Assembly (NCBI GenBank): GCA_013416795.1
Contig: RQSC01000007.1
Span: forward strand, 41,516 to 105,515
Reading direction: 5' to 3'
Origin: Prasinococcaceae sp. CCMP 1430
Taxonomy: Eukaryota; Plantae; Prasinodermophyta
Length of the DNA: 64,000 bases
This document shows positions 16,991-21,918 of the stretch, in pieces (position 1 is the first letter of the stretch; every line of letters starts with the position of its first letter). A program made the position numbers and the translations under genes. The notes under the pieces are model-generated. The model made no database searches and had not been told where the DNA came from. It saw nothing but the letters and a program-made list of their open reading frames with translations.

Positions 16991-17420
16991 CGCCCCCGCC
17001 GCGCTGGCCGCGCCTTCCGTCGCAGCCTCGTCGGTGCGAGTTGGTCCCGCCCCCGCAGCACCGGCAGCGCAGGCGGGCGCCGCCGAGGCGCGGGGCCATG
17101 CGGGCACTGGCCCACGCCCTCGCTCCCTCCCACGCTGGCGCTGTGACGCGCGCGCGCTCTGTGATGCCAGTAGCGGTTTTTGTGCGCGCTGGTGGGGGAG
17201 CAAAAAGGCGCGCGGTGTGGGCCTCTCCACACCGTCCGCGTAGCGCAGCGCCCCCTCCTTCCCCGTGGAGAGTCCGCTCCGTCGGTGAGCGCGACGCCCG
17301 GTGCGGCTCTGTCCGCGCGCGTGCGCACACGCGCCCGCCTCTGCACACGCACACGCACACGCACGCGAGCGCGCGCGCGGACGCACACCGCCGCGCGGAG
17401 GCGCACGTCGCACTTTGCGG

Positions 17421-18626
17421 ATGGCGTCGTCACCCAGCAACGCGGCGGTGAAGCGCCTCCTGCGCGAGGCGAGGGAGGTGGCGCGCGCGGCGGACGCCGA
17501 CTTCGTGGCGGCGCCACTGGCGACGGACCTGTTCGAGTGGCACTTCGTCGTGCGCGGCCCGCCGGGCACGGACTTCGCAGGCGGCGTGTACCACGGCCGG
17601 ATCCTCGTGCCGCCGGACTACCCGTTCAAGCCGCCGAGCTTCATGTTCCTCACGCCCAATGGGCGCTTCGAGACCAACACCAAGATTTGCCTCAACATCT
17701 CCGAGCACCACCCGGAGAGCTGGCAGCCGAGCTGGTCGGTGCGCACGGCGCTCCTCGCGCTCGTCGCGTTCTTCCCGACACCGCCCGACGGCGGCATCGG
17801 CAGCGCCGACTACCCCCCGGAGGCGCGGCGCGAGCTCGCCGCGCGCTCGCGCGCCGAGCCGCCTCTCGAGTTCGGTACCGAGGAAAGAAGGGCCGTGACG
17901 CGCCGGATGCACGAGCTCATGCTCGAGAAGATCAGCGCCGAGGAGGAGGGCGTGGCCCCGCCGCCACAACAGCAGCACCAGCAGCAGCACCAGCAGCAGC
18001 AGCAACAACAACAACAACAGCAACAGGCCGCGGGCGAGGGCGCGACCGAGGAGGCAGAGACCGAGGTGGCTACCGCAGCGGACGACTCAGCTGAGCGGCG
18101 CGAGGCGAGCGGCGAGCGGAGCGGCGACGATGGACCCGCCTCGTGTGCGGCGGGGGGACTATCGGACGCCGCGCCTGCGTCCGAATCCGTTCCCGCTTCC
18201 GACGCTTCTGTGCTCGACTCGCCGGGCGCCTTGACCGCGGCCATGGGTGGTGCCACAAGGGCGGTGACGGAGGGAGAGCACGCCGATGATGGCGGCGTTG
18301 CGAGCGCCACAGAGCGCGTTGAGGCCAGCGAGCGCATGCAGGCGACGGCGGAGGTCGCTACGGCGTCGACGGCCAGCGCCGGGCGGCGACAAGAGCGCGC
18401 GGTGCCAACGCCCGCGGCCGCTGCTGAGGCGGCCCGCGGAGGCGGCGCCGACAGCGACGATGCGGTGGCGGCAGCGGCGGCGCGAGCGCGGCTGGCCGCA
18501 GAGCTCAGCGCCGCGCGACGCGAGCAATCGAGTGTGTCGACGCTCACCGGCGTGCTCGCCGTGGCGCTGCTCGCGGTAGCAGCGCGTAGGATCATGCGCC
18601 TCAGCGGCGTGTCTCTGGACCTCTGA
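17421..18626 (+). CDS. Tail-anchored ERAD ubiquitin-conjugating enzyme E2 (Ubc6/UBE2J1, plant UBC32-like)
   Basis: Motifs AVKRLLREA, DLFEWHFVVRGPPGTDFAGGVYHGRI, YPFKPP and TPNGRFETNTKICLNIS.HHPE.WQPSW (catalytic Cys). A poly-Q linker precedes the C-terminal TM segment LTGVLAVALLAVAA. Confidence 0.92.
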   Translation: MASSPSNAAVKRLLREAREVARAADADFVAAPLATDLFEWHFVVRGPPGTDFAGGVYHGRILVPPDYPFKPPSFMFLTPNGRFETNTKICLNISEHHPESWQPSWSVRTALLALVAFFPTPPDGGIGSADYPPEARRELAARSRAEPPLEFGTEERRAVTRRMHELMLEKISAEEEGVAPPPQQQHQQQHQQQQQQQQQQQQAAGEGATEEAETEVATAADDSAERREASGERSGDDGPASCAAGGLSDAAPASESVPASDASVLDSPGALTAAMGGATRAVTEGEHADDGGVASATERVEASERMQATAEVATASTASAGRRQERAVPTPAAAAEAARGGGADSDDAVAAAAARARLAAELSAARREQSSVSTLTGVLAVALLAVAARRIMRLSGVSLDL

Positions 18627-19092
18627 GCTAGCGCGCGCCGCGTGCAGGTCGCCGCAGCGGTGGTCGCCCTTGTACCTGTAGTCTATACATCCATGCCCAC
18701 GCACGCGTGAGTGCCCGCGCCGCGCCTGCGTGCGCGCGCAGAGGTGCATGCGGTGGCGTGTGAGCCTCTCGTCACCGGTCTGCCACCCCTGCCATCGCTC
18801 CGCTCGGCTGTAGCTATCGCTGCCGCGCCGTCAATGCTCGCCCTCTATCAGCACGCCCCGTCCCCGACTCCGCTACTCGAACAGGGCGTCGTCCCTCCAC
18901 CGCGCGCACGCAGGCGCGGCGAGTGCGTCGCGCGCGCGCGCGATGTCAGCGTGGATCTGCGCGACGAGCGCCTCGAGGCCGTCGAAGCGCTGCTCGGGCC
19001 GCGCTGCGCCACACACGAGGAGGCGCATCTCCTCGTCGTAGAAGTCCGCTGCATACTCGTGCAGGACGTGCGCCTCAACGCTCAGGCCTGCG
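17942..19092 (+). repeat. Copy 2 of the 1151-bp direct repeat, ending at single N (19093)
   Basis: Matches 15483..16633. The second RFK copy is cut mid-exon at the N. Confidence 0.95.
18873..19092 (-). pseudogene. Orphan 3' fragment of riboflavin kinase
   Basis: Encodes AGLSVEAHVLHEY...RWRDDALFE*. Its 5' part is absent beyond n19093. Confidence 0.65.
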
Positions 19093-19350
19093 NCGCGCGC
19101 GCGGGCCGGGCCGCGCGCGCGCGGGCCGTGCGCTGACAGCGCTGTCCGAGGTGCCGCCCAGCGGCTGTGGCGACCATGGCTGACATCGCCACCGCTCGCT
19201 ACGCGCCACAACGCGGCACTGGCGGCCGCCCGCCTTGTGGCACCTCTGCGGGCGCACGCACGCACGGACCCGCGCACTCGCACCCGCACGTAGGGTTTGA
19301 GGTTTGGGTTACATATAGGGTTTACTAAATGGTCAGGGTCTGGACCGCGC

Positions 19351-19995
19351 TCATTGCACCTCGCGCTGCCGACTGGCGCGCCTGGGCCGCTTGGCGGCCG
19401 GGGCAGTCCCATCGCGCGGCGCTCCCGGCGTGTTGGGGGCGTCGGGCGCGGCAGGGGCGGCGGGGGGTACGGGCGCGACCTGCCTGGCCTTCCTAGCCTT
19501 GCTTTTGGGAGGCTCCAGCGTATACGAGTGCGCGTCCTCATTTGCTCCCACCGCCTCGCCGGCGCCAGCCTCCTTGCGCTCGACGGGCCGTGGCCACAAA
19601 TACGCCACCTGCGGCTCGTCGTTCCAGCCGAATTGTGCGTAGTGGTCGGGCTCCTTGAACATAAGCGCGGCGCGATGCGTCGCGTGCAGGCGCTCGTCGC
19701 CCAGCCACGGCGGCAAGGCCACGCCGCCGGCCGGCAGCGCCTCAGGGGTGCACTCGATGTTCGCCTTCCCGCGGCGCGCCCACTCCTCACAGCACGCGTT
19801 GTAGTATGCGGCGAGGGCGTCCTCGTGCCCGCGCCACATCGCCGTATACCCGGCCGCCTGCTGGCGTGCGTAGCGCAGGGGGTTGCGAAGCCAGCGCAGG
19901 ATCATGCGCGCCTCCACGCGCTGGTTGCCTAGCCTCCGAGTGTCCAGCATTCGAGCGCTCGCGTCGAAGTCCGCAACCGGCAAGAACGTAATCAT
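19351..19995 (-). CDS. MSMEG_6728-family protein, pyrimidine-dimer DNA glycosylase (T4 endonuclease V)-like; intronless, 214 aa
   Basis: MITFLPVADF..SAR.LD.RRLGNQRVE, MWRGHEDAL..Y...C.EW.RRG, LPPWLGDERLH.THRAAL..K.P.HY and YLWP match the bacterial family pattern (MQTFLP..DF..SA..LD..RLGKQRVE). The tail is basic, NLS-like (AKRPRR). A TTACA (UGUAA on -) lies at 19309-19313. Confidence 0.82.
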   Translation of the reverse strand: MITFLPVADFDASARMLDTRRLGNQRVEARMILRWLRNPLRYARQQAAGYTAMWRGHEDALAAYYNACCEEWARRGKANIECTPEALPAGGVALPPWLGDERLHATHRAALMFKEPDHYAQFGWNDEPQVAYLWPRPVERKEAGAGEAVGANEDAHSYTLEPPKSKARKARQVAPVPPAAPAAPDAPNTPGAPRDGTAPAAKRPRRASRQREVQ

Positions 19996-20056
19996 GGCTG
20001 CCCGCCCAGCGGTCGGAGGGCGCGTTGCGCGACAGGACGCGCGGGCGTTTCGGGGC

Positions 20057-20266
20057 CTAGCTGGATGGTGCCTCGCCGGCGTCCTCCCCTGCGCGCTCCG
20101 CGCGGTTCGCCGCCTGCCGCTGCGCGCGGCGCTTCGCGTTGCACGACTTGGAGCAAGTTGAGACCTCGTCCCAGACCTTCTCCCACTTCTTGCGCCAGGT
20201 GAAAGGACGATTGCACACGACACACACCTTCGTGGGCAGGTTCTCCTTCGCGACGCCGCGCGGCAT
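20057..20266 (-). CDS. DUF2256 family small Cys-motif protein, 69 aa
   Basis: [42 protein letters not shown] carries the DUF2256 signature LP.K.C..C.RPF.WRKKW...W.EV..CS..C. Confidence 0.88.
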
Positions 20267-20963
20267 GCGCTCGCTGCTACTCGCGCCGCCGCCGCCCTTG
20301 CCGCCGCCGCCCTTACGCCTGCCGCCGCACGCGGCGGTGGCGCGGCGCCGGCTGCCGCCGCCGCGGCCGCCGCGCCGCGTAGTGCTGCCTGCGCTACCGA
20401 GCGCAGCATTGACACCCCACTCCGACCCCTCTCCCTCCTCCCCACCCCGCCCCGCCAGACGCCGCCTGCAGCGGCAGCGCCCGCTGACGTGTCGCGCTCG
20501 CAGGCCGGCGTTCTGGATAAAGGCATTCACATGTTGCCCAGGTTGCAACAATTTCGCGACCGCAGTTTTGAGGAGACGCGGTGCATTTTAATACAATACA
20601 AAACCAACGGTATCGCATTTGTAGTTGAAATTCCCTTGCACAACCGGCAATTTTGAGGATCTGCGATACCAGTTTTTGGCGGCGTTTTCGAACAGTGCGT
20701 GCGCGGTCTATGCGGGCGCTGGTCAAGTGCGGGCACGGCGCGTGCGCCACAGCGTGCGCGTCTGGTTCCCCCCCCCCACACACACAGACTATCCACCACC
20801 CTGTGGCGTGCGTCGCCCGCGCGCGCGGGGACGTCGCCGCAGCGCCCCGCCGTGAGCGCCCAGGTAGGAGAGGGTTCTCCGCCGCGCGCGCGCGAGCGAG
20901 CGCGCGAGCGCGAGCGCGAGCGAGCTGGCGAGCGAGCGAGCGGGCGAGCGAGCGATCGAGGCG

Positions 20964-21918
20964 ATGTCGGTCACCGAGGCCGACGTGCTCGCTGCTGCGA
21001 ACAAGTACGACGTGGCGGACGTGCTCGTGCTGCCGCTCGCACGGCGGCAGCTCGGCGGATCGGGGATGGCGCTGCGCGCAGCGCTGCTACGATGCGAACG
21101 GCTGGAGGAGCTCGACCTGACGGGGAACGCGCTGGAGTCGCTCGAGTGGCTCGGTGGCCTGCCAGCCGCGGCGACGCTGCGCAAGCTCACGCTCACGCAG
21201 AACGGGCTCGCTTCGCTGAAGGGTGCGGGCGCGCTCAACTCCCTGGAGCACCTCATGGTGCAGGCGAACTGTCTGCGTGGTGTGGACGACCTCGCCCTGG
21301 ATGAGCTGGCGTCGCTGCCCTCCCTGCACAGCCTATACCTCGCGAACGTCGACGGCTCGCAGCCGAACCCCGCGTGCAGCGACCCCGGCTACCGAGCGGC
21401 GGTGCTGGGTGCGCTGCCAAAGCTAAGGATTCTCGATGGCGAGAGGCTTGATGGGCCGGGAAGCGCGGCGTTCCGCGAGGCGTGCGGCTCGCACGCGGGC
21501 ATGGGGCTCGACGAACTCGATGCGGCTGCGAGTGGTGCCGAGGAGGACTTCGTCGCCGCGCACGCTCGGGCGGAGGCTGAGCTCGCTGACGCGGCGGACC
21601 TGGACGCCATGCTCAGAGGGGGTGCGTGCCGCACGCGCCTTCGTGGCACCTGCGCGCATGCGCGTGCATCTGACAAGCGCACGCCCGCGCACACGTCGCA
21701 TCGCTGCGCGCGCAGGTCTGCTGCCGGCCCCCGGCGATGGCGCCGCGCCCGATGGCGCGGGCGCGCGCCTCGCCGCGCTCCTTGCAGAGAGCTCGGCGCT
21801 CGCGTCGCGTGCGAAGGAGGCCGTGCTCGAGGCCGAGCGCCGCAACGCCGTCGAAGGCGCCCTCGCGGGCGTTGCCGTGCCCGCGCAGCGGGCCGCACGC
21901 GCCGGTCGGCGCGCGTGA
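20964..21918 (+). CDS. Leucine-rich repeat protein, LRRC61-like; join(20964..21621,21716..21918)
   Basis: SDS22-type LRRs (LEELDLTGNAL, LRKLTLTQNGL, LEHLMVQANCL) and the LRR cap NPAC...YR..V...LPKLRILDGER. Phase-1 intron GTGCGT..GCGCAG. TGTAA at about 21969. Confidence 0.75.

Follow-up and report, generated by a model that had tools for sequence, protein, structure and literature searches.

We examined a 64,000-nucleotide (nt) stretch of the Prasinococcaceae sp. CCMP 1430 assembly (GCA_013416795.1, contig RQSC01000007.1, positions 41,516 to 105,515; hereinafter designated the window), in which an initial annotation had proposed a bicistronic UV-repair module made of two closely spaced open reading frames (ORFs). 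The host is Prasinoderma coloniale: part of the window's 2-amino-3-ketobutyrate ligase gene is 100% identical to EukProt entry PRCOL_00004803, a prefix read here as denoting that species, and the window's GC content of 0.67 is near the 69.8% published for its genome (PMC7455551). Both ORFs lie on the minus strand. ORF1 (ATG at 20266, stop ending at 20057; 210 nt, 69 residues) encodes a DUF2256 protein (Pfam PF10013), and ORF2 (ATG at 19995, stop ending at 19351; 214 residues) encodes a T4-endonuclease-V-like protein of the MSMEG_6728 family (PF03013, NF038085). The 61-nt minus-strand spacer between them (19996-20056) has a GC content of ~77%, within a tract of ~0.78 GC, and contains neither an ATG nor a TGTAA motif. 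Upstream of ORF1, the 5′ leader (20267-20395, minus strand) is likewise devoid of ATG, and RNA contigs start at positions 20277, 20300, 20316 and ~20395. Downstream of ORF2, the 3′ untranslated region (UTR; 19299-19350, minus strand) carries a TGTAA at 19313-19309, which is the single copy on the minus strand between 20560 and 19291, and RNA contigs end at 19298-19308, 5-15 nt past this motif. No AATAAA-like site is present on the same strand over the same interval. The RNA contigs are collinear with the genome across ORF1 and ORF2, and both ORFs are therefore intronless. The ORFs, the profile matches and the collinear contigs thus confirm the arrangement described in the initial annotation, namely a same-strand intronless gene pair with a 61-nt GC-rich spacer that lacks TGTAA, the sole TGTAA lying 3′ of the second gene.

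ORF1 matches the Pfam DUF2256 profile with an E-value of 1.5e-19 (70.3 bits, cut-off 25), and its product is 51-73% identical to bacterial homologues over the domain. Four cysteines (C15, C18, C38 and C42) are invariant among 25 homologues and are accompanied by a WRKKW...W motif. In the AlphaFold2 model (predicted local distance difference test score, pLDDT, 83), a long basic helix comes after a short hairpin knuckle, and the best structural matches of the model are weak (YacG, Z 3.2; the FCS finger of L3MBTL2, Z 3.0). YacG works by binding gyrase, a DNA enzyme; at Z values of about 3, the YacG and FCS matches are too weak to be taken as evidence of homology or of DUF2256 function. We found no paper that assigns a function to DUF2256, which is listed in sORFdb among the Pfam domains most frequent in small bacterial proteins (10.1101/2024.06.19.599710). 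DUF2256 is also present in algae of the green, red and diatom groups, as well as in a liverwort. Several of the eukaryotic proteins (P0074, P0078, P0096 and P0137, including those of Chlamydomonas and the diatom Skeletonema) carry N-terminal extensions of 40-70 residues that resemble organelle-targeting sequences. The Prasinoderma protein has no such extension, and it has in common with the Skeletonema protein a 10-residue signature unlike the bacterial CSDRCR. The exact 69-residue product of ORF1 is absent from a collection of 15 billion proteins and thus has apparently never been annotated as a gene.

ORF2 matches both Pfam PF03013 (Pyr_excise; E-value 6.8e-14, 52.4 bits, cut-off 23) and NCBIfam NF038085 (MSMEG_6728_fam; E-value 1.7e-33, 115.7 bits, cut-off 100). 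Comparison of the ORF2 family profile with PDB sequences returned nothing relevant, and neither hhalign nor hmmalign gave a usable N-terminal alignment of ORF2 with T4 DenV; its relation to the T4 enzyme therefore rests on the Pfam profile and the fold. The AlphaFold2 model (pLDDT 84.6, core above 90) matches T4 endonuclease V (2END) with a Z-score of 9.3 and a root-mean-square deviation of 3.3 Å over 104 residues, the next unrelated chain scoring Z 4.2. Residue 1 of the model is aligned to T4 residue 2 of 2END, the catalytic N-terminus. In T4 endonuclease V, the N-terminal amine serves as the catalytic nucleophile and Glu23 is the catalytic glutamate. About 30 ORF2 homologues start exactly at M-[IQ]-TFLP and share an invariant glutamate, E28, in the first long helix, which by inspection is the likely counterpart of T4 Glu23. 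Since residue 2 of the family is either Ile or Gln, retention of Met1 is probable. A literature search found no report of enzymatic activity for the MSMEG_6728 family.

The ORF2 protein ends in a low-complexity, basic tail. Eukaryotic glycosylase homologues carry a C-terminal R-P-R-R-S-x-R-L motif after a low-complexity linker, represented by RPRRASRQ in the window protein, and this basic motif could be a nuclear localization or DNA-binding tail. Glycosylase genes of the MSMEG_6728 type are abundant in viral contigs (at least 594 confirmed stretches in IMG/VR), an abundance in keeping with a putative role in phage-borne UV repair, as for T4 denV. A further GC-rich alga (Logan SRR5245155, its protein being represented in MMETSP too) has a 383-residue ORF without a Pfam match (L175:3-1154) that overlaps the start of the glycosylase ORF (L175:1129-1872) by 26 nt; this upstream ORF may represent a different upstream partner or an open-frame artefact of GC-rich DNA.

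JGI contig L002 (1019 nt) is 100% identical to the window from 20316 to ~19298, covers both ORFs and ends about 11-15 nt past TGTAA; a protein found on contigs of this JGI series bears an MMETSP label as well. Logan contig L001, from another strain, starts at ~20395 and likewise covers ORF1 and ORF2. Assembled contigs from four sequencing runs were compared with positions 18600-21400 of the window. Among them, a 994-nt marine metatranscriptome contig (X1) covers 19308-20300, two further contigs from runs of one organism cross the spacer (X2, 19511-20163; X4, 19873-20277), and a second metatranscriptome contributes overlapping contig pieces across it. None of the four runs yields an RNA contig on 20386-20760, nor one that bridges the gap from ~19300 to the next same-strand gene, which encodes riboflavin kinase. 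Neighbouring genes are split by the assemblies and ORF1 and ORF2 never are; the breaks thus fall at true intergenic DNA, among it the gap ahead of the riboflavin-kinase gene, and not at the spacer.

The gene pair is kept in a second algal species, identified through P0023, the nearest ORF2 relative having a long contig. There the DUF2256 protein is 81% identical and the glycosylase 59% identical to the window proteins, and the two genes are adjacent with DUF2256 first. The junction differs from that of the window: in all ten contigs examined, Tara Oceans scaffolds and a contig of the JGI transcriptome series among them, the end of ORF1 and the beginning of ORF2 share 4 nt (ATGA, stop and start codon). 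Such an overlap leaves no room for a terminator and a promoter, and ORF2 is therefore co-transcribed with ORF1 in the second species.

These observations bear on whether the window holds two tightly packed monocistronic genes, with an ORF2 promoter inside ORF1 or the spacer, or a poly(A) site of ORF1, and with overlapping transcripts merged by the assemblers. The contig-level nature of the evidence would allow such an arrangement, as would the compactness of a genome in which the next gene begins ~115 nt past the 3′ end of the pair. It is nevertheless improbable, given that contigs from at least four independent sources have the same outer ends and break at the next gap but never at the spacer, that neither TGTAA nor AATAAA lies between the ORFs, and that the 4-nt overlap in the second species would accommodate no separate transcription signals. 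One transcription unit over ORF1 and ORF2, as proposed initially, is supported by junction-covering RNA contigs from several studies together with the retention of the pair in a second species.

Variation among strains is consistent with two separately maintained proteins. The spacer measures exactly 61 nt in all seven environmental contigs of the host type, and an alignment of ten sequences, which represent only about three haplotypes, contains no variable site among its 61 positions. In the same alignment, variable sites at codon positions 1, 2 and 3 number 2, 0 and 4 in ORF1 and 1, 0 and 9 in ORF2, suggesting that each ORF is under purifying selection in its own frame. Invariance of the spacer has a probability of about 0.06 at the third-codon-position rate and is only suggestive because so few haplotypes are represented. 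The last ~57 nt of the leader before the ORF1 ATG are conserved among haplotypes; farther upstream lies a 19-nt indel, after which the sequences become unalignable, and both the leader beyond about –75 and the 3′ UTR are divergent, with indels. In one environmental haplotype (L178:71-364), an upstream in-frame ATG would lengthen the DUF2256 protein by 28 residues; beyond about –75 the haplotype sequence bears no relation to the reference strain, indicating that the promoter and leader evolve fast.

The same data speak to the idea that the locus encodes one long protein, in which the ORF2 frame would begin at the ATG at 20409 or 20526 (352 or 391 residues), giving the glycosylase a long extension that is rich in Ala and Arg and resembles a transit peptide, and making DUF2256 a spurious or overlapping frame. 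The ORF2 frame is indeed open from 20526 to 19351, with in-frame ATGs at 20532, 20526 and 20409, and it is open across ORF1 in the second species too, but at a GC content of about 75%, alternative frames can be expected to be open. RNA contigs never reach 20409, the frame is broken by the 19-nt indel in the strain of contig L001, and the environmental haplotypes carry unrelated sequence upstream. Moreover, variation in ORF1 falls at the third codon positions of ORF1 itself, the DUF2256 profile match has an E-value of 1.5e-19, the ~30 glycosylase homologues begin exactly at M-[IQ]-TFLP, and the 352- and 391-residue products are both absent from the 15-billion-protein collection. We hold the long-protein reading to be extremely improbable, and reject it on the strength of the RNA contig starts, the indel, the haplotypes and the protein collection.

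How ORF2 might be translated from a shared mRNA is suggested by the distribution of start codons. The start codons at 20266 and 19995 are the only two ATGs that the minus strand carries between 20409 and 19995. No ATG occurs in any frame over the 268 nt after the ORF1 ATG, nor over the corresponding 203 nt in the second species (P 0.20 by shuffling), and the leaders of Logan contig L001 and of the second species contain none. The ORF1 start lies in a weak context (gagcgcATGc, with C at –3 and C at +4), and the ORF2 context, with G at –3 (gcagccATGa), is better; in the second species, the ORF1 start has G at –3. The leader is short, at ~35-130 nt. As for an internal ribosome entry site (IRES)-like or otherwise structured element in the spacer, its predicted fold is no stabler than that of shuffled sequences (z 0.46), and this candidate was rejected.

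We thus propose that the locus would be a nuclear bicistronic gene of Prasinoderma coloniale, whose two ORFs would be translated independently from one mRNA of ~1.0-1.1 kb that would start at ~20300-20395 on the minus strand and end ~10 nt past the TGTAA at 19313. Part of the cap-loaded ribosomes would initiate at the first, weak AUG to produce the 69-residue DUF2256 zinc-finger protein; others would scan past it and, with no AUG in the next 268 nt, start at that of ORF2, which has a purine at –3. Judging from these features, leaky scanning is probably the route by which ORF2 is produced, and termination-reinitiation is a possible contributor in the species with the ATGA junction. A putative need of ORF2 for its own Met1, and hence a free catalytic N-terminus, would account for the two proteins being co-cistronic and not fused.

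The initial annotation had further suggested that bacterial DUF2256 genes often neighbour photolyase or cryptochrome genes, a statement borne out by a survey of 80 bacterial DUF2256 loci that were fetched and their neighbours clustered, photolyase counts being taken over 79 of them. The two largest neighbour clusters are photolyase/cryptochrome (PF00875 and PF03441) and DPRP (PF04244). A photolyase-family gene lies within 2.5 kb of DUF2256 at 43 of the 79 loci, and on the same strand within 300 nt at 37, compared with none of the 160 glycosylase control loci (0/80 metagenomic and 0/80 viral) and 1 of 36 viral DUF2256 loci. The association spans at least eight bacterial phyla and was seen in Bacteroidota, Alphaproteobacteria, Verrucomicrobiota, Chloroflexota, Planctomycetota, Actinomycetota, an Obscuribacterales genome and SAR86. 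We found no paper that describes a link of DUF2256 with either photolyase or glycosylase.

Taken together, contig-level RNA coverage and synteny lend good support to the bicistronic reading, and we put the probability that a bicistronic gene with DUF2256 and glycosylase ORFs is the best overall explanation at about 0.7. Several considerations weigh against this reading or the functional link built on it. The RNA evidence consists of assembled contigs, and a contig over two ORFs is not proof of one transcript; that the JGI contigs come from poly(A)+ transcriptomes of cultured strains is probable by analogy with a parallel case. Absence of ATG between the two starts is, taken alone, unremarkable (P 0.12 by shuffling, and 0.46 by synonymous resampling with the Met-free protein held fixed), and the start contexts were graded by the general –3/+4 rule, not by a Kozak consensus derived for the species. 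The TGTAA is replaced by TGTAC in all seven environmental haplotypes (L178-L184), and the second species has TTGTACA after its ORF2 stop (L166:1050-1060). The pair itself was found at none of 80 bacterial DUF2256 loci, 80 metagenomic and 80 viral glycosylase loci and 36 viral DUF2256 loci. Nor was it found in the diatom-like scaffold L003, the MMETSP transcripts L004/5, the Cymbomonas contig L174 and contig L176, or in three contexts in which DUF2256 stands alone (L167, L168 and L169-173). A functional link between the two proteins consequently draws on two separate associations and not on a single conserved module.

Given the TGTAC haplotypes, TGTAA is not secure as the poly(A) signal here, and the host lineage may use a UGUA-based signal in place of the UGUAA of chlorophytes. 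Inheritance of the pair as a bacterial or viral operon was discarded, with no instance in 276 loci. Of the operon-like unit put forward initially, co-transcription is supported by the contigs and the second species, and linkage of DUF2256 to the glycosylase elsewhere is not. Absent from the bacteria, viruses and other algal contigs examined, the algal pair is a lineage-specific juxtaposition that arose separately.

A functional partnership of DUF2256 and the glycosylase is plausible from genomic context. DUF2256 is linked to two mechanistically unrelated kinds of dimer-repair enzyme, photolyases and the glycosylase, and for this reason we tentatively favour, at close to even odds, a role as an accessory factor of pyrimidine-dimer repair, for example as a small DNA- or partner-binding zinc finger. 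A more specific proposal, which we consider doubtful, is that DUF2256 might be a dedicated factor that marks or recognizes UV lesions or docks the enzyme, recruited independently in bacteria and prasinodermophytes, and that the algal 'operon' would have been built from scratch in a form that keeps co-expression while leaving the glycosylase N-terminus free.

Alternatively, the locus could be truly bicistronic and its proteins functionally unrelated, ORF1 sharing a promoter with ORF2 or throttling its translation and the bacterial photolyase linkage being irrelevant to the alga. Most published algal bicistrons are without evident functional coupling (PMC7896298), the pair is missing from the bacteria, viruses and other algae examined, and many eukaryotic DUF2256 homologues stand alone with transit-peptide-like N-termini. 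However, the pair has been kept, with different junctions, in two species whose ORF2 proteins are 41% apart, and DUF2256 is tied independently to another class of dimer-repair enzyme in at least eight bacterial phyla. We therefore regard unrelated functions as a sizeable possibility, although not the expected outcome.

An AT-richer intergenic region at 20500-20700, with a GC content of 0.44-0.50 in the composition profile, separates the bicistron from a divergent, plus-strand leucine-rich repeat (LRR) gene with its start at 20964 and LRR Pfam matches for 20964-21563; this region is likely a promoter region common to both. On the 3′ side lies the riboflavin kinase gene (18663-19190, minus strand; Pfam Flavokinase E-value 8.9e-13 over 18876-19091), whose likely ATG is near 19185, ~115 nt past the 3′ end of the bicistron. 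RNA contigs match the window as far as 19092 and then contain ~280 nt absent from the assembly, which means that sequence is missing behind the single N at 19093. Riboflavin kinase belongs to the pathway that leads to the photolyase flavin cofactor; its position next to UV-repair genes may be due to chance. Farther along, a UBC-type E2 enzyme (17301-18626, plus strand; UQ_con E-value 1.2e-18) has a long poly-Gln tract and a hydrophobic C-terminal segment and looks like a tail-anchored protein of the UBC6 type.

Exclusively bicistronic nuclear loci are known in chlorophyte green algae (Gallaher et al. 2021, PMC7896298; Duenas et al. 2024, PMC11291117), with a published median length of 291-357 nt for ORF1 and 40-183 nt for the inter-ORF distance (PMC11291117). 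In Chlamydomonas and Auxenochlorella, leaky scanning has been linked to a small ORF1, a short spacer and leader, a weak start followed by a stronger one and a lack of ATG, and overlapping stop and start codons are known for Auxenochlorella loci (PMC11291117). Measured against these two studies, the sizes of ORF1, spacer and leader and the start contexts of our locus fit the green-alga polycistron framework that the initial annotation had invoked. Prasinodermophyta branched off before Chlorophyta and Streptophyta separated (PMC7455551), and the host is a prasinodermophyte rather than a chlorophyte, so the 'green alga' premise holds only in the broad sense. We found no paper on bicistrons in Prasinodermophyta, and the main texts of PMC7896298 and PMC11291117 do not mention a DUF2256-glycosylase pair.

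The bicistronic reading would widen the known range of bicistronic nuclear mRNAs to include Prasinodermophyta, which form the deepest green-plant branch, and would thereby bear on the age of bicistrons read by leaky scanning. It would also imply that a gene pair was assembled into a bicistron within eukaryotes instead of being inherited as a bacterial operon. Two independent genomic associations, in which the enzymes repair one and the same lesion but differ in their chemistry, provide a concrete and cheaply testable hypothesis for DUF2256, and the omission of ORF1 from a 15-billion-protein collection points to a systematic blind spot of annotation.

Compared with the chlorophyte bicistrons, our locus is alike in its 210-nt ORF1, 61-nt spacer, short leader and weak-then-stronger start contexts, in having no ATG before ORF2 and a poly(A)-type motif only after ORF2, in an ORF1 missing from protein collections and, as seen in the second species, in overlapping stop and start codons. 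It differs in its prasinodermophyte host and in being known here from contigs and not from Iso-Seq. At the protein level, the ORF2 product resembles T4 endonuclease V (DenV) and chlorovirus cv-PDG in its PF03013 match, its fold and, probably, the invariant Glu in the first long helix, and it differs from the T4 enzyme in being only ~16% identical and in having an extra C-terminal basic tail. DUF2256 belongs with FCS fingers and YacG (DUF329) to the Pfam TRASH clan (PMC4047054) and is set apart from both zinc fingers by its own WRKKW...W motif and long basic helix. In the bacterial photolyase clusters, the same small zinc-finger protein is encoded beside an enzyme that repairs UV-induced pyrimidine dimers, although the partner there is a photolyase/cryptochrome and/or DPRP, not a glycosylase, and the setting is a prokaryotic operon instead of a eukaryotic bicistron. 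A eukaryotic parallel is found in REX1-S/REX1-B of Chlamydomonas reinhardtii, a bicistronic DNA-repair locus (cited in PMC7896298 and PMC11291117). The proteins come from unrelated families (a TFIIH-subunit-like protein there, DUF2256 and a T4-endonuclease-V-like protein here), and the link to UV repair is genetic in Chlamydomonas and drawn from genomic context in Prasinoderma. By contrast, the organization is similar: a small protein and a larger one, each tied to DNA repair, are encoded on one mRNA in Chlamydomonas and would be so in Prasinoderma.

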